Shown here piece after piece: positions 192-63,622 of a DNA stretch of 64,000 bases. The stretch is from Octopus bimaculoides. Its lineage: Eukaryota. The notes under the pieces are model-generated. The model saw only the letters and a program-made list of their open reading frames with translations. It was not told the origin of the DNA and did not search any database. How positions within the stretch are numbered: position 1 is the stretch's first letter; the number at the start of each line of letters is the position of its first letter. A program made the translations under genes and the position numbers. The stretch lies in NCBI RefSeq assembly GCF_001194135.2, contig NC_068983.1, positions 167,747,529 to 167,811,528 of the forward strand. Reading direction: 5' to 3'.

Positions 192-311
192 GTGTTAACC
201 GAGAGGGATTTGATCGAGAGGGTTATGACTTGGCAGGATATAACAGGTATGGATTTGATCATGATGGTTATGATCGGGATGGTTTCAATGTTTCTGGCAG
301 AGATCGTGATG
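192..311 (+). CDS. Exon 1 in window: pentapeptide repeats (GVNREGFDREGYDLAGYNRYGFDHDGYDRDGFNVSGRDRDG)
   Basis: Acceptor tttctgcag|g, phase 1. Probable GC donor GATG|GCAAGT; an in-phase GT donor AAG|GTTAGT at 380 is the alternative. Confidence 0.8.
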
Positions 312-1090
312 GCAAGTTGGACGCTTCTCTTATTTTTGAGAAACAATACTTACAACATAGACATTGTTTAAACAGGAAAGGTTAGTATTGACTATATATA
401 AAAAATTATATGACAAATTTGGGTATTTGTTAGAGTTGCAATTTTAGTTTTGTAAAATTTTAATATTTCATTTACTTTCAGGATTTCTGACTTAAATTCA
501 CAATAACTTTAGTTTAAAGTAAATTTAACTCTTTAAGCATTCCGATTGCTCTGTCAAATGTAATATTTATATTGTTTTGAATGCATCCTGCCTTATCTCA
601 TAGCTTTGAGATTTCGATATGATTACAGTAACATTGGTAGGTGTGAGATGCTAGATCTAGCTGGTTTGAACATAAAACTAATAGAATATTTGAGGCCGGA
701 TATGGCTGGATTAAATGATAAAAGGTTTAACATTAGTGGTTAAGGAAATATCTAATGGATTGCATACAAGAAGAAATGGGGTTAGGAAAATATCTTATTA
801 AGTGTGGGCATGGATCTGTCCTTAAGAAGTTCTCTTTGCAGCCAGGTGGCTTCATGTCCAGTCTCACTGCATGACACCTTGATCCAGTGTCTTCTACTAT
901 GGCTTTGGACCAAACGGTACTTTGTGAGGGAATTTGGTGTATGGATTAAAACCAAGCCCATCATGTCAATCCCACTCGTTCGAATAGACTGGAGATCATT
1001 ACTTCATTTAGAAACAATGAACTGCCAAGACATGAACTGCTGAGCAAACTCATTAAGTGGGGAAATATCAATTCACTTACAAACACTCAT

Positions 1091-1999
1091 ATATCATCAT
1101 CATCATTTAACATCCGCTTTCCATGCTAGCATGGGTTGGACGGTTTGACTGAGGACTGGCGAACCAGATGGCTACACCAGGCTCCAATCTGATTTGGCAG
1201 AGTTTCTACAGCTAGATGCCCTTCCTAACGCCAACCACTCAGAGAGTGTAGTGGGTGCTTTTATGTGCCACCGGCATGAAGGCCAGTCAGGCAGTACTGG
1301 CAACAGCCACACTCAAAATGGTGTCTTTTACGTGCCACCTGCACAGGAGCCAGTCCAGCGGCACTGGCAATGATCTCATTCGAATGTCTTTTTATGTGCC
1401 ACCGGCACAAGTGCCAGGAAGGTAACGCTGGTAGCGATCACACTCAAATGATACTATTTACGTGCCACCGGTACAGAAGCCAGACAGTTGCTCTGGCAAC
1501 GATCACACTCGAATGGTGCTCTTTGCATTCCACTGGTAAAGGTGCCATCACAATTTCGCTTTCGCTTGCCCCAACAGGTCTTCGCAAGCCGAGTTTAGTG
1601 TCCAATGGAGGAGATGTTGGCATGGGTGCCAGTTGTCGAATTTGGTTCGATTTCGATTTCACTTGCCTCAACAAGTCTTCGCAAGCCAAGTTTAGTGTCC
1701 AATGAAGGAAAGGTATGCATAAGTGGGCTGGCTACACCCCTGGCAGAGGCCTCGGATTATGGTCTCACTTGGCTTGCTGGGTCTTCTCACACACAGCATA
1801 TTTCCAAAGGTCTCGGTCACAAGTCATTGCCTCGGTGAGGCCTAATGTTCGAAGGTTGTGATTCACCACCTCATCTCAGGTCTTCCTGGGTCTACCTCTT
1901 CCACATATTCCCTCAACCGCTAGGATGTGACACTTTTTCACACAGCTGTCCTCAGCCATTCTCGCCACATGACCATACCAGCACAATCGTCTCTCTTGC
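1091..1999 (-). mobile_element. RTE-clade LINE 3' fragment (ORF2 C-terminus, 3' UTR, (GAT)n tail), cut by N-gap
   Basis: Minus-strand peptide ERRLCWYGHVARM...GRGRPRKT; begins with catcatcat-ttaacatccgctttccatgctagcatggg, a tail motif repeated many times in the window. Confidence 0.8.
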
Positions 2000-2099
2000 N
2001 NNNNNNNNNNNNNNNNNNNNNNNNNNNNNNNNNNNNNNNNNNNNNNNNNNNNNNNNNNNNNNNNNNNNNNNNNNNNNNNNNNNNNNNNNNNNNNNNNNN
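2000..2099. other. Assembly gap (others at 28644-28871, 33386-33953, ~55295-55304)
   Basis: Runs of N. All are intronic, and exon phases close across them without needing a hidden exon. Confidence 0.98.
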
Positions 2100-2338
2100 T
2101 ATATATATATAATGGTAGAACACCTGTCATATCAACAGGAAATGTGGGTTTGAGTTGCACAGCCTTTGACTTTTTCTATCCAAAATGGTTTTTCAGCCCA
2201 ATATTTATTGGCTATTATTTATAGATTTATGTGCTTCAAGAGCCGCTGTTCAAAAAGAAATTATGTCATGTTCTGTCAAAAAATTTATAAATTTTTGACT
2301 TCAGTAAAAAAAGAAATGTTTTTTTTTATCCATTTCAG

Positions 2339-2581
2339 GTCTTACTAAAGATGGCTATGACCGATATGGTTTTGATATGTATGGATATGATTTAGAAAAC
2401 TGCAATTATTCCTTTAAGGGACCATTTACTACACTGTTGATGCATCGTGTTTGGGAAATTCTTCATACCCAATCGCATGAATTTCTTGTAACTCTGACTA
2501 AAACCTGTCAACCTTTGGAACAACTTCCAAATGTTTGGTATAAGCAATTTTGGATGGAACTCCCTGAAGCATTTGTGGTAG
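2339..2581 (+). CDS. Exon 2: repeats plus CNYSFKGPF module (GLTKDGYDRYGFD...KQFWMELPEAFVVG)
   Basis: Acceptor atttcag|gt, donor G|GTAAGT, phase 1-1; overlaps ORF 2377..2712. Confidence 0.88.
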
Positions 2582-4813
2582 GTAAGTATTTATTTAATGT
2601 TTTCCTTTTATTATTTAATTGTGAAGAATTACATGGAAGCACTCACACAATTATGCTGATGCTTCTAGTGGCCATGAATTGGGAACAGAAAAGGAAATAT
2701 ATCTTATTGTAGCTAAAATTCAATACTTTTGGTAACAAAGCATTGAATAAGTAAAAGAGAATTGAATTCAACAATTATCAGAAAGAAATGACCAATATTC
2801 TTAATTCTATCTCCAAAAATTGAAATGACGCTGAATAAAAATGAAAAGCATTTTTTTTCCTGAATAAGGAATTCTGAATAAGGATGTGCACGCTTTCCAA
2901 GTAAAAATAACTTCTCTGTAGAAGCTGAAAAAAATTGTGTTTTGAAGTTAGAGATGAAATGGCTAAATAGGATTTCTTTGCAGCAGATGTTTATATTAAC
3001 TTTATTGTGTTACCAGATTTGTTTTGAAATATTCTGCCTTGATTTCAATTAATTTGGAGAATAATGAAGAATTTAGTGAAATAACTTTTGTCATCATTAA
3101 GTTCAAAAGAAATGTGGTGTCAAAAAGGTTAAGAGCATCTAGCCATAGAAACTGTGTCACAACAGACAATTGGAGTTTGGACAGCTCTCCAGCCTTGCCA
3201 GCCCCTGTCAAACTGTCCAACTCATGCCAGCATGGAAAATGGACATTAAATGATGATGATGGTAATAATGACATTGTAGTTTCTTTCTTTTTTTTTAATT
3301 AATATGTATCTAAAGAGCTATAGCATATTTTTCAGAGTTTTAATAGAATTATCTGAAAAAATCTCACAACAGTTATTTCGGATGAGTAGAATTCTTTGCC
3401 TAAATCAGAAAGGAAGTTGGTTTAACCTCTTTCATACCAATCCACTTGAGGTGTTCCTTGTTCTATGATAACACAAACTTTCTGTTTTAAAGTGATCTAC
3501 ATTTAAACCTTCCATCAGAATTTCATATTAAGTTTCAATGACAAGTTTGATAATGACAAACTTATCTAACTAAATCCCTTCTTTTTTCAAAGGCAGAGTA
3601 TTTCAACAGCAATATAGTGACTAAAGGACTAAGGATTCATTTTTGCAGGACTCTAATTTCAAGATATCTGTAGCAAGAAACACACTGCAATTACCATATG
3701 TGGTTCTTCTACATTATAGAAATGAAATATAGAATACCAATATGATGCTTGCACATGTTTTATACTGATTTATAAAAGATTTTCTTCAATATTTACTTGC
3801 TAACTTTATGTTTGCCTTTCTCCTGTTGTGCTATTGACCAGCACATCTAGATCACCGATATTGCCACCCAACATCTCTTCTTGCCTTAATCTCACTATCT
3901 ACCCTTACAAGTCTAGGGTGCCCTCCAGCTTTTCTTTCTTATATTACCTTTCACCCACTGCTCCAACCTTCCCTTTTTCTCTAACTCTCCTCCCTTCATT
4001 GCCTCCTTAACTGGAATACTTTCTCTGCATCCACACTGTTCTTCCCCATCTACCTCCTTCATACCCTCCTAGTTCTATTTTCCTTGTTACTTTTCCAGCA
4101 TTCACTTTTCTTTCTCTCTGTCCTCTTCCCCATTTTCTCAGCCTCCTCATCTGGCTACCCTTGTAACACACCACATCTCTCCAGATTCTTTACTACCCTT
4201 GTTTATTTCTTCTATTTTCGTCCCCCTTTCACCATAATCTTCTTTTTCTTTCTTGCCCTTATAAAGTATTTTATTGGACACTCCCACATCACCTTGCTAA
4301 TCTATCCCTACCTTTCTCATTAAACCCTGACTATCTTTGCTTCCCTTGTTTTCTGCCATATTCCATTGTCATGCAGTGTCTGTTAATCTCTGCAGTATCA
4401 CTCTCCTCACAATTATAAATCTATTCCTCTCATCTTCATCCTTTCTCATCAGACACCAAAAAATCATCACACACTCTCCCTTCTAATCTCCTGTTTTAGG
4501 GATTATTTAGGCTCATAGTTTTCCTTGTTGCAAGATGACCTCACTGGGACTGGTACCACAGAAAAAAAGAAAAACCAGTCCACTCTGTAAAATGGTTGGT
4601 GTTAGGAAGGGCATCCAGCTATAGAAACCATACTAAAACAGACAGGGAGCATGGTGCATTTCTCCAATTTGCTGGGTCCAGTTGAACCATGCAAACTATG
4701 CCAGCAAAGAAGGTGGATGCTGATAATGAGGATGAACTTTTTGTTTTGAATAAGTAAAAAACCTTTGATTTCCTTTTAGTCATTGCTACTTTAACAAAGT
4801 TTGTTTTTGTCAG

Positions 4814-5059
4814 ATTTGATCAAGTCGGATGTCCCTCTTCAGCCAGAGAGCAACATTTTGTCTCAAAGAATTTGTTTCCCAATTGAACCATACGTGTCTC
4901 CATGTCCTTGTAATAGAGTTACGACATGTACCATCAATCTCTGTTTGGATGCTGAATGTCCAAGCTATCCCCAAGCCAATTGCTTTGTTGATGTCTGCAA
5001 CGAATGCTCCCCAGTTTGGTACTTGAAAGGAAGGACTGTTGACTGCGAAACGGTCAGAG
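4814..5059 (+). CDS. Exon 3: Cys-rich module (CTINLCLDAECPSYPQANCFVDVCNECSPVWYLKGRTVDC)
   Basis: Acceptor ttgtcag|at, donor AGAG|GTAAGT, phase 1-1. Confidence 0.9.
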
Positions 5060-6275
5060 GTAAGTAACACAAAGAAATAATACCCGGACAATCAAGTGAT
5101 ACAATTTATACCTTGCATCCTGCAGACTCTGTCACCCGAAAAACTAATTTAGGATAAAAGCTTCTTAATTTCACACCAAGATCTTTTTCTAAATTGATTT
5201 TATTATTAAAATATTTGGCACAATTCTTGAAATTTATTTAGATTATTTTGAACAACTAGGATTAATATTTTCTGAAAATGCTTTAAATCATCATTCTATC
5301 ATGAAAATGGTTGAGAAGATCCCAGCAGAAATTAAACTTAGAGCACGAAGAATTGGAAGAAATATAGCAAAGCATTTCTTCCAATGCTCTGATGATTCTG
5401 TTTGCTGACTGCCTTTAGATGACAAATTATCCTGATGTACACAATTGAAACAACGTCGAATTATTATAGCCATCTGTGTACCACATTTAATGTATATATA
5501 TATACTGTTGAAAGCATGATGCTGTAGTGAGTGAAGAGATCTTTACAGACATGTTAAAACACACAATATCTATTGCTACTAAATGGAAATTGTCTTAGCA
5601 GTGACACAGGAGAACACCAGACACATTCTAACCTTCTGAGGCCTTGTCAAGGGTGTGTTCTCGCTCCCACCATGCCTAAATAAAATTATCTCCTTCTGAC
5701 ATATAGGGAACAGGGAGTGATTTATTCATTGATATTGTAGAGAGCTTGCTGAACTGTAAATAAACTCAGTGCATGCAATTGAAACAGCAAATAATCATCT
5801 ACATACATATGTAACATATGTACGGCTATTACAGCTCAGAAAGCTTTCCACAATACCAGTGAATGTGTTATTCATTGTTTCAAAGTATGAATTTTATCTT
5901 GACAAACAGGTGCACAGTATTGACAAACTCTAAGAATTCTGAAACATGTCTGACATTCTTACATGTCACTGTTGAGATAATGTTCACATTGCTCTAACAT
6001 ATTCTGTTTTTAATAAAACTTATCTATGAAGATGTTTTCTCTCAAATAAGAACCACTGCATCATACCTTTCAGTAGTGTATATAAAGATGAACTGTGGTA
6101 CACAGATTATTATAATAATGTTTGTCTGGACTTGCAGGGGTAATAGTGTTTCTTTGAACCTGTCATAGTTATACACCCGCAGCCTCTGTTTTTGCTTCTG
6201 CTGTATCTATACTTAGCCCCAATAACAATTTCTTAGCTTGAGGTTTTTTATACTTTCCTTTCATATTCTTAACAG

Positions 6276-6434
6276 ATTATTGTCATCCAAATCCATGTCA
6301 ACATGGTGCCACATGCATCCAATCTGTGTGGCCTGCAGAACCTTGGTTAGTCTCCTGTAAATGTCCACCTGGTTATGAAGGGGATCATTGCCAGTACAAA
6401 TCAAAAGAAATTTGTTACCTTCCTTTACAGAAAG
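6276..6434 (+). CDS. Exon 4: EGF-like domain (DYCHPNPCQHGATC...CKCPPGYEGDHC) plus start of Kunitz domain (ICYLPLQKG)
   Basis: Canonical six-Cys EGF spacing; acceptor ttaacag|at, donor AAG|GTAAGT, phase 1-1. Confidence 0.93.
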
Positions 6435-6572
6435 GTAAGTCACTTTGTCATGCTCATTGTTCTATGTCATTATTACAGGGTATGACAAAGAAATCAAACC
6501 CTTCCAGATTCACTAGTCTTGATAAAAGTTACAAGATGCAAAATATGGCACCAGTCCAAACTAATAATAACT

Positions 6573-8270: not shown

Positions 8271-8385
8271 TTGTGATAATGATTTTAAATATTTCCTTTT
8301 GCTATCTAAAGTTTTTTTTATACAGTTATTTATCAATTTATAAAGACATAGCTGTAAAAACCCAGCATCATTCTCTCTTTTACAG

Positions 8386-8593
8386 GTTCCTGTTCAAGGA
8401 ATGTGAGTCGTTGGTACTTTGACTTCCATCAATCAAAATGTGTCCAGTTTGACTATTCTGGTTGTGGGGGCAATGCTAATCTATTTGAGACACTTACTGA
8501 TTGCCAGAAAAAATGTGTTGTTGGTGCTTGTTGCTACCGGCAGCAACTTAATCCAGGAGTTACCATTGGCTTTGGGCCTGATGGCTATGATAA
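8386..8593 (+). CDS. Exon 5: rest of Kunitz/BPTI domain (SCSRNVSRWYFD...GCGGNANLFETLTDCQKKC) plus GACC segment
   Basis: Kunitz motifs RWYF and GCGGNxNxFxTxxxC; acceptor tttacag|gt, donor AA|GTAAGA, phase 1-2. Confidence 0.93.
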
Positions 8594-9968
8594 GTAAGAT
8601 TAATTTCTCTAATTGTTTGTTGTATTATCCTTTTAAGCCTTAAGATTTATTTTTGCTCTATCACTAAGGGTTATTCAGCCACTCTTGCATTAGTGTTATG
8701 GGAAAATGCTTGCAGTACATTTTGTGAAACCATTGATGTTAGAGAGGGCATCAAGTTGTAGAAACCAAGTCAGATAACACACTTGAGCAAGCATTTAGTC
8801 TTTGGGATATCTCTCAGATTATGGCAATCCATCCAATCCATGCTAGCATGGAAAAACAAATGTCAAGTGATGTTGATGACAACAATAGTTTCATTTGTGT
8901 GAATATCAGTTAATAAGAAAACTGAAGAGCCGGTAAATTTCCCCCTACCCATGTGAAGTAAACCTGAAATTATAGATACACAAATTTAAGACTCTATAGA
9001 TGGTTGGTGCCTGAGTTTCAAGTTTATATATGGCATAAATTATTGACTTTAGGTTAAATTTTCTTCTGTCTCTGCTACAAGACACTGATGATTCTATTAT
9101 TGTGTTCTGGGTCTCTAACTCTTGCTTGAAGTACTGATGTTTCTATGGATTTTCTATTATTTATTAACTGACAATTACTTAAGCTGATTGAAATTTCAGC
9201 TGCTCATCAGAATGGATTGTTTCACTTGGTTTGAAATTTTTGACAACTTATCTAAGTCAGTCCACGAAAAAAGAATTGAACCTGTAGTCTGCACCAAACA
9301 AATAGTTGGTATGGCTTTGGGGTTAAAAAGATTGCTTCCCAGTCACATGGTTTCAAGTTCAGTCTCACTGTGCAACACCCTGGGAAAATGTCTTCTATAG
9401 TCTTTGGCTGACCAAAGCCTAGTGAGTGTATTTGGTAGATGGAAACTGACTGTTGTGTGTGTGTGTTGTATTGACATCATGCAATAGTTGTAAATAAGTG
9501 CCACTATTATATAAGCAATGTTCTTCATTATCAGTATTCCATGCCATAGAGAAATATTATCTTGCTTGCTAATAGGTGAGGGTTGGTAACAGGAAGGGCA
9601 TCCAGCTGTAGAAAATCTACCTCAATGAATTCCTTGTGACCTGGAAAAGTATATGAGAATGATTAACAGATCAGATGAGAAAGTTGAAAGAATCATACAA
9701 TCTTATTCTTGTCTATGAATCTGTAATTCTGATAATCTGTTTCCTGGTGTGGGAGAGCTGGAGGAGACCACAATAGTGGACTCTCTGGAACTTGTTGAAC
9801 ATAGATGCTCTTATCATTCACCATCCTCTGCAGGGTCAATATAATAAACACCAGTTATACAATGATCCAATTCAAATATATAAATTCCTCTCAAAATTTG
9901 AACCAAAACCCAGTCCAAAGAAATGGAAATAATTAAAATGAATAATTTTCCGAAATTTTGTCTTTCAG

Positions 9969-10078
9969 GTATGGGTTTAATGTAAAAGGTTACAACCAGT
10001 TAAGGAAAATGTTCAATGCGAAAACTGGAATGAAAATGGGAATCAACAGATTCAAGAAGAATGGCTATGATTGGCATG
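9969..10078 (+). CDS. Exon 6: pentapeptide repeats (YGFNVKGYNQ...NGYDWHG)
   Basis: Acceptor tctttcag|g, donor ATG|GTGAGG, phase 2-1, matching both neighbours. Confidence 0.82.
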
Positions 10079-10355
10079 GTGAGGCATTTTACATGTCAGT
10101 TTTAATACATGTATTGTGCATGCATGATGGTGTGTGTGTGTGTGTGTGTGTGTGTGTCTTGACATCAATAAATAGTTGTAAATGAGTATCATCATAAAAG
10201 CAGCGAATTCTATATTTGGTTGTGATTCTTTTGTAAATGAGAAGGCTTCATGTTTCATTTATCTTATTAGAATAAATGATGGTGGATAATTATATTTAAA
10301 AAAAAAAAAATTTCCTATTTCTTGCCTGTATAAAGATTTTTCAAAGTGTAAGATA

Positions 10356-10406
<51 letters not shown>
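10356..10406. repeat. (ATT)n microsatellite
   Basis: Directly visible pure tract. Confidence 0.95.
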
Positions 10407-10408
<2 letters not shown>

Positions 10409-11650: not shown

Positions 11651-11727
11651 TTTTCAGTTTTAGCTTTTATCATGAAGCAATTTTGTTTCTTTCTGATCTG
11701 TGAATACCAATGGTTTCTCTGTTGCAG

Positions 11728-11893
11728 GTTATGACAAAAATGGATTCAACTCTGTTGGTTATAATAGACTAGGCTACAATTCTGAAGGTTATGATCCATT
11801 CGGATTCAACATGACGGGATATAGCAGAGAAGGTGAGTTTGATGGCATGATCGACTATGATGATGATGGCTACGATGAAGAAGGTTATAACAG
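11728..11893 (+). CDS. Exon 7: pentapeptide repeats (GYDKNGFNSVGYNRLGYNSEGYDPFGFNMT...GYDEEGYNR)
   Basis: Acceptor gttgcag|gt, donor CAG|GTGAGA, phase 1-2. Confidence 0.88.
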
Positions 11894-14793: not shown

Positions 14794-16569
14794 AGCAGGG
14801 TTCAATTGTGAAGGTGTTAACCGAGATGGTTTGGATATTTATGGACGTCATGCTGGCTTCAAGTATTCTTGCATAAGAACCACAAGGAAAAGGTGTCGAC
14901 ATTTGGAAACTGAAGATGATGTTCAAATTGTTCGTTTTTCTCCAGGGAAAAAATGTGAAGATGTCAGTTGCAAGCCAAATTGTATGTGTTGGTTTAATAA
15001 TGAATTCCATAGGATTTGGGATAATTTCAATGTAGGCTGTGAGAAATTTCAGTGTCACTTGGGAGGGTTTTCACAAATGAATTCTTGTCAAAAACATTTT
15101 CAACGCAAAGAGATTCGTGACATGAGTTTTGATGAAATGAAGCGTTACCAACTTGTTATCCAGAATCTACAGCATGAAAAAAGAAACGGTAAATCTGTGT
15201 GGTATGAATTTGCTGAAATGTATTCAGAATATATTCCTCAAGCTTCAGGAAATCCTTTATTTTTGCCATGGCACCGCTACTTTTTGTTTATGGTTGAAAA
15301 GTCGATGCAAGATGTTGAATGTGGTGTTGTGATCCCATATTATGATTGGACCCTTGATATTGGTGTCTTGAATAAATCAGTTATTTGGTCATCCAAATAT
15401 TTTGGTGGTAATGGTGAAAATGGAACAGATTGTGTCAGATATCATCCATTTAAGTCTTATCATCCACCATATTGGACCCCTTGTCTCCGTAGACACTTCA
15501 ATTCTTCCGTACATCTTCCAGACGCAATTCATGTTTATTTGGCTATACAGGAAAGTACCTTTAGTGATTTTTCAGCTTACATGGAATCAATGCTGCATCT
15601 TTTCCAGATGTGGGTTGGAGGTCACATGAACTCACCTCTCAGTGCTTACGACCCCCTTTTCTATTCACATGTAGCTTTTATTGATAAACTCTGGGATGAT
15701 TGGCAGAGGAGTCATAAGAAAGGTTTGCTGCGATTTCCTCTTAATTTTCGATATGTTCCTATGGAACCTTTCAAAGTTAGCCCTGACGATGTATTAGATT
15801 GCAAAAAACAAATCTGTATAACCTATCTGAATTTACCATTTGGGTCACCATGTAACCAGACCAAAATAAAGACCTTTGGATATGGTAGTGATAGTTATGA
15901 TCGTCATGGCTTTGATAAAAATGGTTATGATAAAGATGGATTTGATGTCCATGGAATAAACATTGATGGCTATATTGATCTCAGAGGAATATATAATAAC
16001 GAGGGATTTGACAAAGAAGGATTTTCTAGACAAGGTTTTGATAATATGGGCTATGACAGAGATCTCTTTCACGAAGACGGTTACAATCCTGATGGCTTTG
16101 ATGTTGCTGGCTATGACAGATCTGGTCATAATAGATATGGTTCCAGCAGAATCAAAACGAATGTCTTTAGTGAACATGTTTCTACATTCAGAAAGAATGA
16201 GTTCAATGAACTTGGATTAAATAACTTGGGTTTTAATAACAAAGGCTTTGACATTTTTGGTTTTGACAAGGATGGATTCAATCGCTTTGGTTGCAATTAC
16301 TATTTCAATGGCCCGTTTTATATAATCATATACCAGTCACTTAAGAATAAACTTAGCGAGATAAAATCCATGCATTCTTTGATCAATATCCCAAGGTTGT
16401 GTCCTGCAGTGTCGCAGCTTCCTCATTGGATGTATAAAGTTTATTGGTTGAACCGGCAAAAAACCATTCCAGAAGTTTTAGCAATCATGGCTCTGGACAG
16501 ACTGAAAAATCCTTATTCATTTGAAGATGTCTTTGACAAAATTTGGATTCCTCCTGTTCCTGATCATAG
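14794..16569 (+). CDS. Exon 8 (1,776 nt): Cys-rich segment, tyrosinase/type-3 copper domain (~15104-15830), pentapeptide repeats (~15878-16294), CNYYFNGPF module
   Basis: ORF 14831..16573 contains RKEIRDMS, FLPWHR, IPYYDW, YFGGNG, CLRR, WVGGHM and DPLFYSHVAFIDKLW. Acceptor tttacag|a, donor AG|GTAAAC, phase 2-2. Confidence 0.95.
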
Positions 16570-18499: not shown

Positions 18500-18594
18500 G
18501 TTTTGTTTGGAAACAAACTTCTTTTCAAAATGTCCCTTAGGTCATGCTCCTGTTAAATGTTCATCAGATTTGTGCTTTGATACGATTTGTCCGG
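18500..18594 (+). CDS. Exon 9: first half of second Cys module (RFCLETNFFSKCPLGHAPVKCSSDLCFDTICPG)
   Basis: Acceptor ttttcag|g, donor CCGG|GTAAGA, phase 2-1; aligns with exon 3. Confidence 0.88.
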
Positions 18595-21155: not shown

Positions 21156-21248
21156 GTATATCTGGTGCCATATGCCGAGTGAACTATTGTGGGACCTGTT
21201 CGGTTGAATGGTATGATGCTCGCTCTGGTGATTTTGTAGAATGCCAAG
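21156..21248 (+). CDS. Exon 10: second half of Cys module (GISGAICRVNYCGTCSVEWYDARSGDFVECQG)
   Basis: Acceptor tttctag|gt, donor AAG|GTACTT, phase 1-1; completes the Cys spacing seen in exon 3. Confidence 0.88.
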
Positions 21249-21304
21249 GTACTTTGAAATAATAGCTTTAGCTAGATGAAACTGTGGAAAAAAGGTTTTG
21301 TTTA

Positions 21305-35373: not shown

Positions 35374-35549
35374 GTATTGTGCTCTGCAGGGAGAAGCAAT
35401 GTACCAAACTGGAGTGTCCACGTAGCAGAAATATCACAGGACAGTGCTGTCCCCAGTGTGAACCCTTCTGCGAATTCAAAGGTACAGTATTCAGTGAAGG
35501 AGAAACAGTTAAAGACTCCACCGATCCTTGTTTACAGTGCAGTTGTCAA
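35374..35549 (+). CDS. Exon 17: VWC5 C-half plus VWC6 N-half
   Basis: GIVLCREKQC...CCPQCEPFCEFKG...DPCLQCSCQ; acceptor ttgaaag|gt. The donor CAA|GTGAAA is weak; an in-frame TTA|GTAAGT at 35588 would add 13 aa. Phase 1-0. Confidence 0.85.
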
Positions 35550-37137
35550 GTGAAAGAAGAAATTAATTCTGTGGGAGAACATCATTTAGTAAGTTATATA
35601 ACTTCTATTCTTCAAATATACCCCTTAAAACTAACACCTGAGGATCTTGTCATTCTGTTAGAAGAAATGATTTTGTCCGTACCCTGCAGATTAGAAAATT
35701 GTTGATGTAACTATTTGCACTGCTATGGCATTCTGCTGTTATTATTATTAGTCCAACCCATGCTAGCATGGAAAGCGGACGTTAAACGATGATGATGACT
35801 TCTATTATTGTATACATATACACACGCAGCTATAAGGTTGAGCTATATATATTTTTATATATTAATTACATCATTGTCATTTAACTTGTCTTCCATGCTG
35901 GTATGGGTTGGATGGTTAATCAGGATCCAATGAACCAGAGGAGTGTGTTGAGCTCCAATGACTGTTTTCACATAGTTTTTATGGTTTGATGCTCTCCCTA
36001 ATGCTAACCCCTTTATAGAATATACTGGATACTTTTTTGGGAGGCATCAGTACTAATGAAGATCACCTGACAATTTGCAAGATGAAAAGCCTAAGCAGGG
36101 CTCTATAACTTCAGGTGAATAGAAGAGACAGCTGATTGGACAGGCTCTGATCAAAAGCATTCTAGTTGTAACCACCCTGGTTTTTTCCTATGTGCAGTGA
36201 AACCAGGACAACATTGGCCAATGTTTTTTTCTTTTTTTTTTTGTAAGACTAGTGTGATTTGAAGGAATATTGGTTGCTATTTTTAGAACATGGAGGAATC
36301 ATGTAGGGATTTTCTCATGGGCTTACCAAGCATAGTTCAGTGTAAAATTTACTTCCAAGGAGCTAAATTAATTAAAAATGTTACTTCACTCTTCACACTG
36401 TCCAGAATTGCCTTATCACTGTTTCCAAAGCAAGCCTTTAGGTTTTTGACAAAAGATTAATGCTCCTTCAAAACCTTTAAAAATTCTTTATATTGACTCT
36501 CAGTTTTAAGATAGGTGTAATATCTAACCATTCCCATAGAAAATTCACCAATGGGTTTAAACACTGTTAATTATGGCATTCATAAATTCAGAATTCATCA
36601 GAAAAGCAGTCACCACCTTCTCAAAGTTGACTCAAAACATGTAGGTAAAACAAGAAACATTCACATGCATTTGTTCCATGAATATATTATTATATGGAAA
36701 CTGGTTTGAAGATAAGAAAAAAAAAAAGAAAAAAAAATCTCAATTTTTGTCTTTTAAACTGATTTGTGATTAATTCTTAGCCACCATTATTTGAACAGAT
36801 TGACCAATTCAAAGACCTTTTTCCATAGCTTACATCTAAAAACACATACACTAAGATAACCTGACCTATTTCACTTTGGAATGTTTTGTGTTGTATGATC
36901 AGGTCTTCACTGGTTTTTATCATTTTGTTCTGTTTAATCATTTTGTTTGTGATAGTTTGATGTGCCCTGTCTTGGTGACAATTCATCATTGTTGTCACTA
37001 TCGTCATAATGCCTTCTTTTTTCCTTCATGCTTCCATAGAACAGAGTTTTCTATGACTTGATACCCTTCCTGTTGGCAAATCCCCACTTGTTTCCAAGTG
37101 AGGTAATAATCTCCCAGTCTATAAAATAATAACCAGC

Positions 37138-37234: not shown

Positions 37235-37420
37235 GTCCCCAGCATACAATGTTTGTACATAAAAGACCAGTGCAAACCTACCGAATGTAGTCACCCTGCA
37301 AGGATGCCAGATCAATGTTGTCCTGTCTGTGAAAATTGTTATTATTTAAGGAGGATCTTTTACAATAATCAAAGCTTTACATTACCTGATGGTGACCCTT
37401 GCAAAGTGTGTACATGTAAG
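37235..37420 (+). CDS. Exon 18: VWC6 C-half plus VWC7 N-half
   Basis: VPSIQC...CCPVCENCYY...DPCKVCTCK; acceptor gctcag|gt, donor AAG|GTAAGT, phase 0-0. Confidence 0.9.
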
Positions 37421-38345: not shown

Positions 38346-38528
38346 GATGGAAAAGTTTCATGTAAAAGAACGCAATGTCCATTTTTGAATTGTTCAAACC
38401 CTATGCAACTTCCAAACCAGTGTTGTCCAGTCTGTGAAAGTGGTTGTCATTCGGAAAGAGGTTCTTATTATTTAGAAGGACAAAACTTCGATGATCCAGA
38501 AGATGACTGTCGCACATGCATGTGTTTA
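38346..38528 (+). CDS. Exon 19: VWC7 C-half plus VWC8 N-half
   Basis: DGKVSC...CCPVCESGCHS...CRTCMCL; acceptor cttgaag|ga, donor TTA|GTAAGA, phase 0-0. Confidence 0.9.
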
Positions 38529-38842: not shown

Positions 38843-39019
38843 AACAGACAGATTGTTTGTAGAGTTAAAGAATGCCCTCCAATCTCATGTTCTCACCCAG
38901 CTCGAGAAACTAACCGCTGCTGTCCAACTTGTGATTTTTGTGAATATGACCGGAGAATCTTCAGAGACAAGCAAAGATTTTTTGATCCTCGACTTCCAAC
39001 AAGAACATGTGAATGCTTG
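38843..39019 (+). CDS. Exon 20: VWC8 C-half plus atypical VWC9 N-half (not in the ORF track)
   Basis: NRQIVCRVKECPPISC...CCPTCDFCEYDRR...PTRTCECL; acceptor cttgtag|aa, donor TTG|GTAAGT, phase 0-0. Confidence 0.9.
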
Positions 39020-41254: not shown

Positions 41255-41459
41255 GCTGGTTCAGTTGTATGTGATGCAGATGGTTCAACTTGTTCATATG
41301 ACGGAAAAACTTACAAAGAAGCAGAGGTTTTCTCAAGCCATAACAAATGTGAAGAATGTATCTGTCAAAATTCAAAAGTCACCTGTCAATCAGTCTCTTG
41401 TCCTGATTTGCAATGTCAACATCCTGCAAACACTGATGGTTGCTGTCCTTCTTGTTATA
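41255..41459 (+). CDS. Exon 21: end of truncated VWC9 plus VWC10
   Basis: AGSVVCDADGSTCSYDGK...CCPSCY; acceptor tttcag|gc, donor TATA|GTAAGT, phase 0-1. Confidence 0.9.
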
Positions 41460-43937: not shown

Positions 43938-44620
43938 ATTGCACATTCTCTGGAAACAACTTCCAAAATAAAGAAGTCTTTCAGGACCCACAAGACACTT
44001 GCAGCACTTGCCAATGTCAAGAGGGCACAGTTGTATGTAATAAAAAATTCTGTCCAACTTTGCACTGCACTCATCCCAACCAAGAGCCTGGAGAATGCTG
44101 TCAGTCTTGCCAGAATTGCAACTACCTTTCACAGACCTATGGGGATAGCAAAGTATTTGCCAACCCAGAGAATCCCTGTGAAACTTGTCACTGTGAGAAA
44201 GGATCAGTGAGATGTCAGACAAGTCAGTGTCCCCCAGTTTCATGCACTCATCCTTCAAAACAAAATACTTGTTGTCCTAAATGTGCTGGTTGTAATTTTG
44301 ATGGTCATGAGATTCAGGATCGGCAAATGTTTGCCCATCCGGCTGACGAGTGTCAAATTTGTGAATGTATTGAAGGCAGAGTGAGATGTACTCAGAAAGA
44401 ATGTCAGCCAGTCACCTGTAATAACCCAGTTATTAATTCTTGCTGTCCAGTTTGTACTGACTGTCTTTATGAAGGTAGAACTTTAAAGAACCAACAGAGG
44501 TTTGCTCACGAAACCGACAGTTGTCAAATATGCCAATGTCTTGATGGAAATATTCACTGCACCGTTGAGAAATGTCCTGAGGTCGAATGTACTCATCCTG
44601 CTAAGAAACACTGTTGCAAG
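43938..44620 (+). CDS. Exon 22: VWC11-VWC14
   Basis: Four tandem VWC units in ORF 43913..44644; acceptor tttacag|at, donor AAG|GTATTT, phase 1-0. Confidence 0.95.
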
Positions 44621-45851: not shown

Positions 45852-46052
45852 GAATGCCACGACTGTTCATATAATGGAACTGAATATGGTAACAACATGG
45901 TCTTCCGAGATCCAATCAACCTGTGTCAGAGATGTATCTGTATAGATGGAAACATCAATTGTCAGGAAAGGCAATGTCCACAAGTTCAGTGTCAGAACCC
46001 GAATATTATTGACTGCTGTCCTGTTTGTGAAGATTGTGTCTATAATAATCAG
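45852..46052 (+). CDS. Exon 23: end of VWC14, VWC15, start of VWC16
   Basis: ECHDCSYNG...CCPVCEDCVYNNQ; acceptor ttacag|ga, donor CAG|GTACTT, phase 0-0. Confidence 0.92.
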
Positions 46053-46588: not shown

Positions 46589-46996
46589 GTCATTCAAAAT
46601 GGCAGAACTATCCAGCACAAAGACGACGGATGCCAGCTGTGTGTCTGCCAATCAGGTGATCTCCGTTGTACCGGAAAGGGTTGCAAGGAAGTGACTTGCT
46701 CTCATCCTGTGTCTCGAAACTGCTGTCAGGAATGCTCTGACTGTAAATGGAATGCAACATATGTTGTCAGCAATGGTGGTCAAGTTTTGGATGAAGTACA
46801 ATGTAAAATCTGTGAATGCCATAATGGTGATTTGTATTGCGTTGCAAAGGACTGCCCTGCCACAAGATGTTCACATCCAGTCAAAAAGAAATGTTGTTCT
46901 GTGTGTGATGACTGCTTTGTAAATGGTGAGATAATACCAAATGGAAAACAACAACAAATTGGAGATGATAATCCATGTCGTGTTTGCAAATGTCAG
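46589..46996 (+). CDS. Exon 24: VWC16, VWC17, VWC18 N-half
   Basis: VIQNGR...CCQECSDC...CCSVCDDC...NPCRVCKCQ; acceptor cttcag|gt, donor CAG|GTAGGA, phase 0-0. Confidence 0.93.
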
Positions 46997-51927: not shown

Positions 51928-52101
51928 AATGGTTCTTTTGAATGCCACTCAAAATCCTGCCCTCAACTGAGCACTTGCACCAATCCTGTGATCCGTGACT
52001 GTTGTCCGGAGTGCTTTAACTGCATGTATGGAGGTCAGGAATGGCTGAATCTTAGTAATTTTACTGATCCTCAAGATATGTGTGGAGAGTGTTTATGTGA
52101 G
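51928..52101 (+). CDS. Exon 25: VWC18 C-half plus VWC19 N-half
   Basis: NGSFECHSKSC...CCPECFNCMYGG...CGECLCE; acceptor aaacag|aa, donor GAG|GTTGGT, phase 0-0. Confidence 0.9.
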
Positions 52102-54996: not shown

Positions 54997-55090
54997 GATG
55001 GGAATGTTAGTTGCCACAGGATGTCATGTGCCCAACCTGACTGTGATAACCCAATAAGAGTGGCTGGTCAGTGTTGTCCTGCTTGCCCAG
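54997..55090 (+). CDS. Exon 26: VWC19 C-half (DGNVSCHRMSC...GQCCPACP)
   Basis: Acceptor ttgcag|ga, donor CAG|GTAAGA, phase 0-1. Confidence 0.9.
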
Positions 55091-55275: not shown

Positions 55276-55319
55276 GCTGTGCGTGAGAAGACACNNNNNN
55301 NNNNTATATATATATATAT

Positions 55320-55908: not shown

Positions 55909-55957
<49 letters not shown>

Positions 55958-57909: not shown

Positions 57910-57995
57910 ATGCTTGTGAATATAATGGACAAGTTTATGAAAATGGTGAAAACTTTGCTGATGCCTCAGACCAGTGCAAAGAATGTACCTGTCTT
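57910..57995 (+). CDS. Exon 27: VWC20 N-half (DACEYNGQVYENGENFADASDQCKECTCL)
   Basis: Acceptor cttctag|at, donor CTT|GTTAGT, phase 1-0. Confidence 0.9.
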
Positions 57996-58792: not shown

Positions 58793-58957
58793 GCTGGCTA
58801 CGTTAACTGTTCCTCGCTACAGTGTAATCCTGTGACCTGTACTCATCCTTCCAATAATAATTGTTGCGATGTGTGTTATGACTGTGTCTACGAAGGCAAC
58901 TCTGTATCCAATGGCCACAGCTTCAAGAAAGATGCCTGCCAGACCTGTACATGCAGG
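58793..58957 (+). CDS. Exon 28: VWC20 C-half plus VWC21 N-half
   Basis: AGYVNC...CCDVCYDCVYEG...DACQTCTCR; acceptor tttttag|gc, donor AGG|GTGTGT, phase 0-0. Confidence 0.9.
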
Positions 58958-59202: not shown

Positions 59203-59279
<77 letters not shown>

Positions 59280-59459: not shown

Positions 59460-59553
59460 GATGGTAATGTGATTTGTATTAAAGAAAGCTGCCCTCCACT
59501 TAATTGTCCCTTGGCAGAAAGATTACCAGGACAATGTTGTGCTCAGTGTCAAG
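59460..59553 (+). CDS. Exon 29: VWC21 C-half (DGNVICIKESC...GQCCAQCQ)
   Basis: Acceptor tttcag|ga, donor AAG|GTAAAG, phase 0-1. Confidence 0.9.
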
Positions 59554-59664: not shown

Positions 59665-59838
59665 AATGCACTTACAAGGACCGTACTTACAAGAATGGAG
59701 CAATGTGGTTCTCAGATGATGACTCCTGCACCTCTTGTACCTGCCATGATGGTTCAGTGACATGTTCAGAACTCCAGTGTATCGTGCCATGTTCCAATTA
59801 TGTTGAAGAACAAGATCAATGTTGTCCTGTGTGTCCAA
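59665..59838 (+). CDS. Exon 30: complete VWC22
   Basis: ECTYKDRTYKNG...CTSCTC...QCCPVCP; acceptor ttccag|aa, donor CAA|GTAAGG, phase 1-1; the preceding intron is only 111 bp. Confidence 0.92.
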
Positions 59839-61100: not shown

Positions 61101-61439
61101 CACACAAATTCCCACACACCTTTCTCTTTCAACTGCCCCTCCCCCTCCACTCATACACCTGCACACCACCTACCTCAGTACCCTCACCAGATGACACTAC
61201 TATACAAACACTCATACACACTATTCAACTCATTACTCACATCATACACACCCACAAACACCTTTCTGCTTCATACACACCATTATCCATGCACACTCTT
61301 CAATAGCATCACCACACCACTATACGAGCACCCTTACACACACCACCATGCACACTCCCACACCCTCACACACTCATATGCATTCCCACTCCACACATGC
61401 ACTGAGTTACTTATACACACACACAGACAACATGGCACA

Positions 61440-62830
61440 CTCAAGGAGTGAGTTATTGTTTTTGGAGCCATATTCTGGTGTAGGAGGTTTACCTGAAAGT
61501 TTTTGTAGGAATTTGTCCCAAGACTTCTTGAACTTTATGGGGTCTATTCCTGCTTTGTGTTTTGGTGTAATGTTAAAAGAGTGGGGCCAATTGAGGTGAA
61601 ATGATTGTGCCATATTGTTGTTATATGATGCGATTATGATTTTTGTTGTGGGCAGATAGGACAGGGCCCAAGTCTTGGATGTATCTTGAAGGTGATGCTA
61701 ACATCATTTGGGTAATGCTGATAGAATATTTTCCACATCATGCAGATGTTGTAGTGCTCACAGTAGCAGTGGAGAGAATAAGGCTTGAGCTTTTCTAGTC
61801 AACTTCAAAAGTCAAGGCCTGTCATGCCATCTATCTCTTTTTGTAATTGACCTTTGAGGTGCTTCAGTTTTCATCATGCTTTGTTTCATGTAAGGAGACC
61901 ACAGTGGACAACAGTATTCAAGGTGGGGTTGGGCAAAAGTAGAGAAGAGAAGGATAATGGTGTGGATATCTCCCGACTGGAAAGTTCTGGAGCACATTCT
62001 GCAGGCCATGTCAACATTGCTGTTTATATGAGTGGCCCAGCTTATGTTGTTGTCCACAATTTCTCCCAAGTCCCTGATGTTGTTGGATGCCATGAGAGTT
62101 TCACCTGAAGGAAGGGAGTGTGGGAGTTTCAAGGTGTCCTCTTTTCTGAAGTGGATTAACTCAAATTTGTCCTCGTTTAGCAGCATATTATTCTTTTCTG
62201 CTCATTGGGTGACTGAAGGCATGCCCGGTCACCCACTTCATTGATGACCTTCTGGATCCTGGAATCATCTGCAAAGATTTTTATGTTGCTGTACTTGATG
62301 GTGTCATTGATATAGATGATGAAAAGGAGTGGGCCCGACACAGTGCCTTGTGGAATACCACTGCAGACTTTGACTGGGTTTGATTTTACTCCTTTGACTC
62401 CACGTGTTGGGTTCTGCCTGTCAGGAAACACTTGATCCATTGTAGTAACTTTCCAGTGGCACCAATGTTGGATAGTGTTTTTCAAAGGCCTTGCTGAAAT
62501 CAAGGTAGATGACATCGGTGTTGGAGCCCTCTCCCAAAGCTCTCAAAATGTCATCAAGGTGATGCAGGAGCTGCGTTAGGCAGTTCCTTCCATTACAGAA
62601 CCCATGTTGGTTGGGGTTCAGCAGTCTGTTGCTTTCAAGAAAGTGGGTTATCCGTGATCTCACCACCCTCTCAAATACCTTGATGACATGAGAGGTGAGT
62701 GAGGTTGGCCGGTAGTTCACTGTTAGGGACTTGTTTCCCTTTTTGAAAACTGGGACAACAAACTGGAACTGAAAGTTCTCAGGAATGTAACCAGTATCCA
62801 GTGAGTTCTTCCTCAGATTAGCAAGAGGAG
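61440..62830 (-). mobile_element. CR1/L2-like LINE RT fragment
   Basis: VVPVFKKG...NYRPTSLTSHVIKVFER, NQHGF, IYLDFSKAF, GIPQGTVSGPLLFIIYIND, FADD, PHLEYCCPLWSP; frameshifted. Confidence 0.88.
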
Positions 62831-62834
62831 ATGC

Positions 62835-63320
62835 ATGCAATTGGGATGTAAAAAGCACCATTCGAATGTTGGGCTTCACAGAGGCAATGTGGCCAATGCC
62901 ATTGGCATGTAAAAAGCACCTGTTGAGTGTTGGGCCTGATGGAGGCAATAAGCCTGATGCTAGTGTCATGTCACCTGACACCTGTGCTGTGGCATGTAAA
63001 AACCACTCTTTACACGTTGAGCCTCATAGTGGCAATGACAAAAGACTGAGACCTTTGGCATTATGCCGTGCTTGAGAAGAAGACCCATGAAGCCAAGTGA
63101 AATTGTAGTCTTGGCAGATACTGGTGTCATGCAAATGGCACCCATGCCAGTGGTACATAAAAGCACCCATTACACTCTCGGAGTGGTTGGCATTAGGAAG
63201 GGCATCCTGTCGTAGAAACCATGCCAAATCAGACTGGAGTCTGGTGCAGCTCCTCAGCTTGCTAACCCTGGTCAAACCATCCAACCCATACCAGCATTAT
63301 TAAAAGATGATGATGATGAT
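62835..63320 (+). mobile_element. RTE-derived 3' UTR/tail element
   Basis: ggttggcattaggaagggcatcc...ggagtctggtgcagc...ccatccaacccata...gatgatgatgat; the same tail also occurs at ~3130-3260, 4550-4735, 7420-7605, 43730-43895 and 63880-64000. Confidence 0.75.
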
Positions 63321-63539
63321 ATATAAACACACGCACATACACGCATATGTCCTAGAATATCTGTTTCAGTGCTACAGCATTTGAGTTCTGATCCTGTCAA
63401 CTTGGATATTGTTTCAATCTCTGTCTAAAAATCCCTACAACACCACAAGTCAAATCAACTGACAGAAATATGGCCTTAGACTGAGACAAAAATTTCTTAT
63501 TAATCGCTTGTGAAATTCATGAAATATATTTTTTTTAAG

Positions 63540-63622
63540 GCTGCACCCATCAGGGCATTACTTACCAAGAAGGAGCCCAGTTCAATTTGAATAGCGACCC
63601 CTGTGAACCTTGCACTTGTGAG
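63540..63622 (+). CDS. Exon 31: VWC23 N-half (SCTHQGITYQEGAQFNLNSDPCEPCTCE); gene continues past the window
   Basis: Acceptor ttttaag|gc, donor GAG|GTAAGT, phase 1-0. Confidence 0.88.

Follow-up and report, generated by a model that had tools for sequence, protein, structure and literature searches.

An octopus gene combining EGF, Kunitz, tyrosinase-fold and VWC domains is probably the octopod ortholog of KCP in its ancestral long form

One of the questions raised by the 64,000-nucleotide stretch of Octopus bimaculoides DNA analyzed here (the window; contig NC_068983.1) is whether a pseudo-tyrosinase, pentapeptide repeats, EGF and Kunitz domains and a long VWC array, which an initial annotation had chained into one giant extracellular protein, belong to a single gene, and whether their combination is new. 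The window very probably represents an internal 64-kb part of one octopod gene that is orthologous to KCP (kielin/chordin-like protein, Kielin) and has the ancestral long form of that family. KCP is a BMP-modulator family, and the octopus gene is real yet is no novel chimera, since the same architecture is annotated in many animals.

Rebuilt independently from splice sites and phases, the plus-strand chain again consisted of 31 exons in one frame, from 192 to 63622, and all 30 introns are of the GT-AG type. The first version encoded 2,373 amino acids without a stop codon; after the exon 3 acceptor and the exon 17 donor were refined by reference to the ortholog of Argonauta hians (the alternatives being 4847 and 35549), the chain was 2,397 amino acids long, also without stops. 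That ortholog, the 3,774-aa "kielin/chordin-like protein" GAB1599713.1, is 79% identical to the chain and collinear with it over residues 825-3219, and 28 of the 30 junctions are identical, which bears out the reading as one gene. The Argonauta protein adds 824 residues before the chain and 555 after it, so the window, which opens within the repeats of a first cassette (A) and closes in VWC23, holds an internal part of the gene and is open at both ends, as had been proposed.

The introns are crowded with transposon debris, and four N gaps lie in the span, at 2000-2099 (intron 1), 28644-28871 (intron 13), 33386-33953 (intron 16) and 55295-55304 (intron 26). Debris and gaps together could point to a pseudogene or an assembly artefact in which exons are joined over missing sequence, but the probability of this is close to negligible. 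Every gap is intronic, and the Argonauta alignment is uninterrupted across all four gap-bearing junctions with no residue missing; therefore, the gaps hide no exon. The 2,397 codons are free of stops, and 79% protein identity to another genus argues for purifying selection.

The cassette region occupies exons 1-10. Exons 1-3 hold the end of cassette A, whose tyrosinase-like domain falls outside the window on the upstream side. Exon 1 (192..380) encodes G[YF][DN]xx pentapeptide repeats and is defined by the acceptor ctgcag/GTG, the five-residue repeat spacing and 79% identity to Argonauta residues 825-886. The last repeats and a helical linker follow in exon 2 (2339..2581; 72% identity to residues 887-967), whose paralog is the terminal part of exon 8. 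Exon 3 (4814..5059; 80% identity to residues 979-1049) encodes the Cys-rich "Ct" domain of this cassette; starting at 4814 rather than 4847 adds DLIKSDVPLQP, which has a counterpart in Argonauta, and the apparent stop of the exon falls within a perfect GAG/GTAAGT donor. Cassette B begins with exon 4 (6276..6434; 85% identity to residues 1050-1102; donor AAG/GTAAGT), which contains a six-Cys EGF domain (Pfam EGF, E 5.6e-07, in ORF 6242-6571) and Cys1 of the Kunitz domain. Cys 2-6 of the Kunitz/BPTI domain, with Ser at P1, and a GACCYR linker are in exon 5 (8386..8593; 80% identity to residues 1103-1171; Pfam Kunitz_BPTI, E 1.6e-16, in ORF 8358-8594), and the Kunitz-GACC motif also occurs in fish homologs. 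Exon 6 (9969..10078), a repeat/linker segment, is in phase with strong splice sites and 92% identical to Argonauta. Exon 7 (11728..11893; 89% identity) carries the pentapeptide repeats ahead of tyrosinase-like domain B and is conserved in two unannotated relatives, L001 and L002. The 592-residue exon 8 (14794..16569; 85% identity) encodes, in order, a small Cys-rich module, a tyrosinase-fold pseudo-enzyme domain, pentapeptide repeats and a helical region. Exons 9 (18500..18594) and 10 (21156..21248; phase 1) encode the first and second halves of Ct domain B. The G[YF][DN] motif occurs 35 times in total, and 25 of the successive intervals are exactly five residues.

The assignment of exon 8 to the tyrosinase fold is clear. 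Pfam Tyrosinase (PF00264) matches ORF 14831-16573 with E 2.7e-24, the AF2 model (pLDDT 75) retrieves tyrosinase folds in Foldseek with TM 0.72-0.75 normalized to the target, and PDB sequence matches include hemocyanin (best E 2.3e-70) and tyrosinase (E 1.2e-23). The domain thus shares the four-helix-bundle fold of the type-3 copper proteins (tyrosinase, catechol oxidase and the functional units of mollusc hemocyanin); those are free enzymes or oxygen carriers, whereas the octopus domain is one part of a multidomain matrix protein. It also differs at the copper site. Alignment to hemocyanin and tyrosinase structures indicated that only CuA-His3 is kept of the six copper-ligand His residues, the others being replaced by Tyr (CuA-His1), Ser (CuA-His2), Leu (CuB-His1), Gln (CuB-His2) and Val (CuB-His3). 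This degeneracy is common to the family across Bilateria, and none of the family members checked has all six ligands. Because five of the six are replaced, a cross-linking, pigmentation or copper-binding role of the kind that had been suggested is unlikely. An active type-3 copper oxidase with a cross-linking or pigmenting action on the matrix would accord with the unambiguous fold and Pfam match and with the frequency of tyrosinases in the shell and matrix secretomes of molluscs, but the family-wide loss of ligands makes it highly improbable.

Downstream of the cassettes, exons 11-31 encode the VWC array. A regex scan for VWC N- and C-halves found 22 domains and, where the window closes, a further N-half, in agreement with the earlier count of at least 22; the halves alternate strictly on the plus strand, and none was found on the minus strand of the window. 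The C-half of VWC9 is absent. The same scan gave one stray VWC motif at 29041. A Pfam VWC match was obtained in every array exon tested.

VWC1 is split between exon 11 (25170..25249; N-half motif, 93% identity to Argonauta) and exon 12 (26538..26631; C-half). Exon 13 (27409..27656; Pfam VWC E 1.3e-11) contains VWC2 and the VWC3 N-half, exon 14 (30097..30190), preceded by the gap-bearing intron 13, the VWC3 C-half, exon 15 (30970..31149) VWC4, and exon 16 (32863..32946) the VWC5 N-half. Exon 17 (35374..35588), which follows the gap in intron 16 and whose donor at 35588 was set by the ortholog, encodes the VWC5 C-half, the VWC6 N-half and a 13-aa linker. The array continues with the VWC6 C-half and VWC7 N-half in exon 18 (37235..37420), the VWC7 C-half and VWC8 N-half in exon 19 (38346..38528), the VWC8 C-half and a degenerate VWC9 N-half in exon 20 (38843..39019), and the VWC9 remnant with VWC10 in exon 21 (41255..41459). 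VWC11-13 and most of VWC14 lie in the single exon 22 (43938..44620; Pfam VWC E 1e-27 in four stretches). The end of VWC14, VWC15 and the start of VWC16 form exon 23 (45852..46052); VWC16, VWC17 and the VWC18 N-half, exon 24 (46589..46996); the VWC18 C-half and VWC19 N-half, exon 25 (51928..52101); and the VWC19 C-half, exon 26 (54997..55090), which is followed by the gap in intron 26. Exons 27 (57910..57995), 28 (58793..58957) and 29 (59460..59553) hold, respectively, the VWC20 N-half, the VWC20 C-half with the VWC21 N-half, and the VWC21 C-half. Exon 30 (59665..59838; Pfam VWC E 4e-09) is VWC22, and exon 31 (63540..63622) is the VWC23 N-half, whose end aligns to Argonauta residue 3219 of 3774 and whose GAG/GTAAGT donor carries the gene past the window. 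Exons 12-30 are all supported by Argonauta alignment, combined with half-motifs (exons 12-16, 18-21 and 23-29), splice sites and phase (12, 16, 17 and 20) and Pfam matches (13, 22-24 and 30). The domain calls of the initial annotation, from the pseudo-tyrosinase to the kielin-like array, were upheld.

The critical point is whether the cassettes and the array are one gene. It is formally conceivable that two or three adjacent genes were wrongly chained, a tyrosinase-like/Kunitz gene ending in TLK and a stop at 21260 upstream of a separate KCP-like VWC gene, and that a further break might lie between the cassette A Ct domain and the EGF exon. Fish homologs terminate exactly past the Ct domain, the exon 10 donor (AAG/GTACTT) is weak with a stop only three codons into read-through, and phase 1-1 exons are frequent in extracellular genes, so that phase compatibility alone is weak proof. 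We nevertheless consider adjacent genes very unlikely. The tyrosinase exon ends in AG/GTAAAC at 16569, and its continuation across PDHR/FCLETNFFSKCPLG into exon 9 is conserved in fish, Elysia and Argonauta proteins; therefore, the TAA at this site does not serve as a stop and the exon splices on in phase, as first proposed. The phase-1 G/GT donor after the Ct domain is the same in L001 (60% identity), L002 (44%) and Elysia, but the read-through tails beyond it differ (TLK in the window, RFNIP and 35 aa in the relatives), and the exon order of both relatives is that of the window. In two other genomes (P0358 and P0361), the second half of the Ct domain and the VWC1 N-half lie within one exon. 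The exon 10-11 junction is identical in Argonauta, and identical junctions occur in gene models of at least eight phyla-level lineages. A 275-aa probe over the helix/Ct/VWC1-2 junction recovered, when searched exhaustively, proteins of >3,000 aa from Argonauta, Lingula, Branchiostoma, Limulus, Anneissia and a shark that match the whole or nearly the whole probe in one stretch. The EGF and VWC1 exons both begin at acceptors and lack a start codon and a signal peptide, and no AATAAA or ATTAAA hexamer is present within 1 kb downstream of 21260. The exon 3 donor is perfect, and the Kunitz domain is complete only through the exon 4-5 splice, its Cys1 being carried by the EGF exon.

A single locus could still yield alternative products, and teleost genomes provide a parallel. 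Proteins annotated as "uncharacterized protein LOC...", for example in Thunnus maccoyii, Centroberyx and Diretmus (~700-840 aa), have the order EGF-Kunitz-tyrosinase-like-Ct, are homologous to exons 4-10 (36-39% identity over exon 8) and share the PDxR/FC junction, the repeats and the Ct domain with the octopus gene. They are annotated as stand-alone and end in C[HQ][GDE]W and a stop directly after the Ct domain. The teleost gene is nested in a kcp intron on the same strand, after KCP residue 397; the acceptor of its EGF exon is out of phase with the upstream kcp exon, and none of the teleost models has a signal peptide. Because this cassette is annotated separately and ends after the Ct domain, a short isoform terminating after cassette B at the TLK stop is conceivable in octopus beside the giant form, as are cassette-skipping isoforms. 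The shark "isoform X2" that contains the cassette, the Lingula isoforms of 4,202, 4,190 and 3,740 aa and the weak exon 10 donor are compatible with this, but the missing poly(A) hexamer and the divergence of the post-Ct tail among molluscs are not in its favor. We regard such products as possible, if somewhat doubtful; they would supplement and not replace the long-form KCP gene.

That the combination is novel, as the initial annotation had tentatively suggested, did not survive comparison with other animals. With the Ct-plus-VWC part as query, the top matches were vertebrate and invertebrate KCPs. Gene models of this architecture bear the name kielin/chordin-like protein in Argonauta, Lingula (three RefSeq isoforms), Limulus, Tachypleus, Priapulus, Anneissia (a crinoid), Branchiostoma (amphioxus), Ptychodera (a hemichordate) and a shark, with the same domain order and cassette-to-VWC junction. 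The long-form models include GAB1599713.1 of Argonauta hians, XP_013412576/584/593 of Lingula anatina, XP_022244270.1 of Limulus, XP_033101456.1 of Anneissia, C3YUQ0 of Branchiostoma, XP_060698749.1 of Hemiscyllium and the Priapulus RefSeq KCP, in which PF00264, VWC and VWD occur together. The octopus structure was read from genomic sequence, and these proteins are computational predictions made by several independent pipelines for several phyla. Sequences of >3,000 aa of the tyrosinase/kielin type have also received passing mention (PMC11667028, 2024). Two cassettes are present in Argonauta and Lingula, and the N-terminally truncated Limulus model retains just the Ct end of the first; a single cassette, against two in octopus, is found in the models of the crinoid, amphioxus and shark, and in Priapulus the array comes after a single cassette and Kunitz domain. 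The cassette is absent from the Mytilus and Haliotis models, which look truncated or mis-built because they set in abruptly within a VWC, carry an unrelated N-terminus or no signal peptide, or are marked partial. As to whether this is a well-characterized family, KCP is well known and the architecture is widely annotated under its name, but the tyrosinase/Kunitz cassette is uncharacterized.

Vertebrate Kielin/KCP (CRIM2; Xenopus Kielin, mouse and human KCP) has in common with the octopus gene the long tandem chordin-type VWC array and, through the orthologs of the latter, the N-terminus (LamG/TSPN-like region, coiled coil, LE[TS]CEC) and the C-terminal VWD and TIL-like end. Among the matches listed, tetrapod KCPs have VWC and VWD-type families only, without tyrosinase; in the octopus gene, by comparison, two EGF-Kunitz-pseudo-tyrosinase cassettes separate the first VWC from the array. 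The VWC modules of crossveinless-2/BMPER and chordin belong to the same Pfam family but number only 4-5, and these proteins lack the cassette with its tyrosinase, Kunitz and EGF domains. The domain scan of the Argonauta ortholog detected two Tyrosinase stretches, 20 VWC domains and a BMPER-like C-terminal VWD at 3453-3598, where a VWD beyond the window had been anticipated.

Judged from Argonauta, the full octopus protein would be ~3,800 aa. It would open with a KCP-type N-terminus, comprising a thrombospondin-N/LamG-like region, a coiled coil and an initial VWC, and continue with two cassettes in tandem. Each cassette would consist of EGF and Kunitz domains, G[YF][DN]xx repeats, a tyrosinase-fold domain without a copper site, further repeats, a helical region and the small Cys-rich domain; ~27 VWC domains, the VWD and a TIL-like end would complete the protein. 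Vertebrate KCP/Kielin is secreted, and its VWC array binds BMP/TGF-beta-family ligands, adjusting their access to receptors. To our knowledge, BMP modulation by KCP has been demonstrated in vertebrates only, and by analogy we infer that the octopus protein would likewise be secreted and would use its chordin-type CR array to bind such ligands and tune receptor access. The tyrosinase-fold domain is most likely a binding or structural module and not an oxidase, and the Kunitz domain, with its P1 Ser, would serve in binding or be an inhibitor of an atypical kind. The octopus protein may, besides its presumed modulation of BMP signaling, serve as a matrix component.

The window is shown here to carry a single multi-exon gene predicted to encode a cysteine-rich extracellular mosaic protein that is orthologous to kielin/chordin-like protein (KCP, or Kielin). 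A chain built only from conserved domain cores, GT/AG sites and reading phase runs from 192 to 63622 in 31 exons without a stop codon; all 30 introns are GT-AG, with phase 0 within VWC domains and phase 1 between domains. With the ortholog as guide, the acceptor of exon 3 was then set at 4814 and the donor of exon 17 at 35588, giving a protein of 2,397 aa. This independent rebuild (31 exons, 192-63622, 2,397 aa) reproduces the exon count, span and length of the initial annotation, and Pfam searches of long open + strand segments confirmed the domain types it had named. The window has the composition of eukaryotic DNA, with a G+C content of about 38% and four N runs. These gaps are all intronic (introns 1, 13, 16 and 26), the alternation of VWC half-domains is continuous across them, and the Argonauta protein aligns without missing residues at all four gap-bearing junctions; judged from the sequence, they hide no exons. 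The introns contain reverse-transcriptase fragments (RVT_1) at 22962-23678, 42274-42540 and 62421-62981 (introns 10, 21 and 30, - strand) and a DDE_3 transposase fragment at 19563-19847 (intron 9, - strand). Intronic (CA/TG)n and (CAT)n microsatellites are abundant (~27700-28300, 25270-25300, 21310-21325 and elsewhere) and give rise to spurious Cys-Val or poly-His open reading frames.

Two kinds of search bear on the identity of the gene. A query composed of the small cysteine-rich domain (Ct) that precedes the VWC array, together with VWC, retrieved KCPs from vertebrates and invertebrates; almost all of the best 120 matches are KCP, and they include a Priapulus RefSeq KCP in which PF00264, VWC and VWD occur together. 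An exhaustive profile-free search used a 275-aa probe spanning the junction between the EGF-Kunitz-tyrosinase-like cassette and the VWC array, and the probe was matched whole or nearly whole, in one stretch, by proteins of 3,055-4,190 aa. These long-form KCPs are encoded by Argonauta hians (GAB1599713.1, 3,774 aa), Lingula anatina (three RefSeq isoforms), Branchiostoma floridae, Limulus and Tachypleus, the crinoid Anneissia and the shark Hemiscyllium (isoform X2), and a shorter KCP model from Ptychodera aligns with probe residues 28-243, the greater part of its length. The KCP models of Mytilus and Haliotis have no tyrosinase domain; they were not counted against the long form, because they start abruptly inside VWC, have no signal peptide or an unrelated N-terminal sequence, or are marked partial.

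Residues 825-3219 of the Argonauta ortholog, which like all the orthologs compared is a computed gene model, are collinear with the window protein at 79% identity; 28 of the 30 splice junctions coincide exactly, and the difference at the remaining two is explained by alternative sites, with which conserved residues are retained. Two tyrosinase stretches, 20 VWC domains and a VWD domain at 3453-3598 were found in the Argonauta protein. The C-terminal VWD plus TIL-like region characteristic of KCP/Kielin would lie 3' of the window. The N-terminal signal peptide, TSPN/LamG-like domain and coiled coil of KCP/Kielin would lie upstream; they are found in the Lingula and shark long forms, the N-termini of which match that of Xenopus Kielin, and the Argonauta model matches only in the coiled coil and first VWC domain. 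Local BLAST detects two cassettes each in the Argonauta and Lingula proteins and a single one in those of the crinoid, amphioxus and shark; the order within a cassette is EGF, Kunitz, repeats, tyrosinase-like domain, repeats, helix and Ct. Both gene ends are outside the window, which on this sequence evidence covers the central part of an octopod KCP gene and begins in the repeats of the first cassette.

The long tandem array of chordin-type VWC (CR) domains that is a trait of KCP/Kielin is present. A scan for VWC N-half and C-half patterns found strict alternation from 25172 to 63619 on the + strand only, amounting to 22 domains and a final N-half, with no half pattern on the - strand of the window. 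Every array segment tested matches Pfam VWC, and the spliced protein does so with E 3.9e-120 in 19 stretches. VWC9 (38939-39019 and 41255-41290, + strand) is degenerate, its N-half being short of one CxxCxC cysteine and its C-half reduced to 'AGSVVCDADGST', and this degenerate sequence is conserved in Argonauta. A stray N-half match (CAVKEGGSLVCNICGC) at 29041-29088 on the + strand, in intron 13, is outside the chain and without counterpart in the ortholog, and is probably due to chance.

The critical question is whether the cassette and the VWC array are parts of one gene. The initial annotation had proposed that the tyrosinase exon splices onward, and this was borne out: the TAA of its open reading frame belongs to the donor AG|GTAAAC at 16569, and the exon at 18500 completes an Arg codon and then reads FCLETNFFSKCPLG, a continuation that agrees with teleost RefSeq proteins (...PDHRFCFKLHWFSGCPLG...), an Elysia model and Argonauta. 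A stand-alone tyrosinase protein was also considered, as a search with the tyrosinase open reading frame gave mostly unnamed frames of ~600 aa that end in PDxR*, like the one in the window. It was rejected because those frames are calls on unspliced genomic contigs; at their N-termini polypyrimidine tracts have been translated, and what reads as their stop codon comes from the donor's GTAA.

The Ct domain is encoded by exons 9 and 10, with a paralogous copy in exon 3. The exon 10 donor, AAG|GTACTT, is weak, and skipping it leads to a stop at 21260 after TLK, the point at which the homologous teleost protein ends. Several results speak for use of the exon 10-11 splice in this lineage. On ENA contigs that carry no annotation, two relatives (L001, 60% identity in exon 8, and L002, 44%) have the same exon order as the window: helix, Ct, EGF, Kunitz, repeats, tyrosinase, Ct1, Ct2 and VWC1 onward. 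In all three the phase-1 G|GT donor after Ct and the phase-1 acceptor before 'C.DD' are identical, and the tails produced by read-through are wholly different (TLK*, RFNIP* and 35 aa). The Elysia model continues through ...LTCSG|CVDDSR... into VWC domains. In two further genomic contigs, P0358 (Logan, 1324 nt) and P0361 (JGI, 1225 nt), the second half of Ct and the VWC1 N-half form a single exon with intron-like flanks, the counterpart of window intron 10 being absent; a gene boundary at that position is therefore impossible there. No AATAAA or ATTAAA is present within 1 kb after the TLK stop, compared with 1.37 per kb in introns, and the VWC1 and EGF exons both begin at acceptors, without a start codon or signal peptide.

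The remaining cassette domains were also identified. The EGF domain (PF00008 in 6242-6571, E 5.6e-07) has its six cysteines (CHPNPCQHGATC...SCKCPPGYEGDHC), and the Kunitz domain (PF00014 in 8358-8594, E 1.6e-16) has its six-cysteine pattern. It is the EGF exon that supplies, at its 3' end, the first Kunitz cysteine (6410-6434 / 8386-8400); intron 4 therefore divides the domain, which exists only after the exon 4-5 splice; this cysteine gives the C-x8-C spacing (EIC-YLPLQKGS-C). In contrast to trypsin-type Kunitz inhibitors, which have a basic P1 residue (Lys/Arg) after Cys2, P1 in the window Kunitz domain is Ser (GSC-S-RNVSRWYF). The G[YF][DN] motif occurs 35 times, and the spacing between successive motifs is exactly 5 residues in 25 cases; the G[YF][DN]xx repeats are encoded in 192-380, 2339-2420, 8570-11893 and 15800-16310. 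This repeat is not covered by any Pfam model, and weak matches of 35-42% identity were seen to repeats of bacterial proteins annotated as TrbI/VirB10, DUF6273 and others.

The tyrosinase-like domain retains the fold but not the full set of copper ligands expected of the family. Pfam Tyrosinase (PF00264) matches the 580-aa open reading frame at 14831-16573 with E 2.7e-24, and the solved structures matched by sequence are mollusc hemocyanin units and bacterial tyrosinases. An AlphaFold (AF2) model based on 33 homologs (pLDDT 75, pTM 0.76) superimposes on bacterial tyrosinases with TM-scores of 0.72-0.75, normalised to target, and the central-domain fold of type-3 copper oxidases is present in it. 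However, only one of the six histidine ligands of these oxidases remains. In alignment with hemocyanin, CuA His1 and His2 are replaced by Tyr and Ser, and only His3 is kept; CuB His1, His2 and His3 are replaced by Leu, Gln and Val. Because CuA His3 alone remains, the domain is predicted not to be an active type-3 copper oxidase. In a set of 19 family sequences, drawn from molluscs, a brachiopod, a chelicerate, a priapulid, a crinoid, amphioxus, a shark and ray-finned fishes, no member has all six copper histidines, and the ligand loss is judged to be old. The earlier description of a pseudo-tyrosinase was thus apt, and an oxidase, pigment or copper role is unlikely, five of six ligands having been replaced. 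The exon 8 stretch that precedes the domain (14960-15110; SPGKKCEDVSCKPNCMCWF...GCEKFQC) is folded into beta strands in the AF2 model and is similar to a VWC N-half, and the corresponding part of an Amia protein matched VWC10 at 41276-41365 (E 0.013).

The arrangement in teleosts is different. Diretmus argenteus CM109053.1 (contig L004, 10001-35838) has an EGF-Kunitz-tyrosinase-like-Ct gene at 13662-17354, inside kcp and on the same strand, which is annotated as its own gene and lies 180 bp downstream of the kcp exon whose last residue is 397. A plain in-frame internal part of kcp is opposed by the acceptor of the EGF exon, which in Diretmus does not share the phase of the preceding kcp exon; a donor at the teleost W-stop, moreover, would be phase 2. 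The homologous teleost protein ends directly after Ct, with C[HQ][GDE]W* in most fish models, and no signal peptide was found in about 20 fish cassette models. In teleosts the cassette has the appearance of a separate or terminal unit; the shark cassette is part of a KCP isoform. This suggests that in ray-finned fishes the gene was split or the cassette became an alternative terminal one.

The initial annotation read a real gene correctly. It had also described a chimera, its novelty unverified; the same architecture is already in public annotation of many phyla as KCP, and the octopod gene is a further member of that family. A literature search on kielin and tyrosinase found one passing remark on such >3,000-aa tyrosinase/kielin sequences (PMC11667028) and one eggcase proteome. 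Further searches, in which the single paper retrieved appeared unrelated, brought up no description or test of the cassette in print. We hold with moderate confidence that the EGF-Kunitz-pseudo-tyrosinase cassette is an ancestral, integral part of KCP across Bilateria, doubled in lophotrochozoans (and possibly in chelicerates), carried by an isoform in the shark, split off as a nested unit in teleosts and missing from the tetrapod KCP models examined.

The VWC array of vertebrate KCP/Kielin binds ligands of the BMP/TGF-beta family and modulates their signalling, and by analogy the octopod array would do likewise. With their inactive tyrosinase fold, their repeats and a Kunitz domain that has Ser at P1, the cassettes probably provide additional binding surfaces. 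It is also plausible that the protein functions in a matrix: in that of the argonaut eggcase, the proteins reported to be most abundant are kielin/chordin-like VWC proteins (bioRxiv 10.1101/2021.07.10.451900). Given that proteome, octopod KCP could bear on matrix formation besides BMP signalling.

For the window, the result is mainly a correct annotation, in which one KCP gene accounts for a large region riddled with repeats and no exon is lost to the assembly gaps. The wider point is modest but real: in most of the animal lineages sampled, KCP carries one or two tyrosinase/Kunitz cassettes devoid of a copper site, together with the G[YF][DN]xx repeat. To our knowledge, functional work on KCP deals with the tetrapod form, which is without cassettes. 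If the cassette tunes BMP signalling or matrix assembly, then the textbook KCP, a VWC array plus VWD, would be a reduced derivative.
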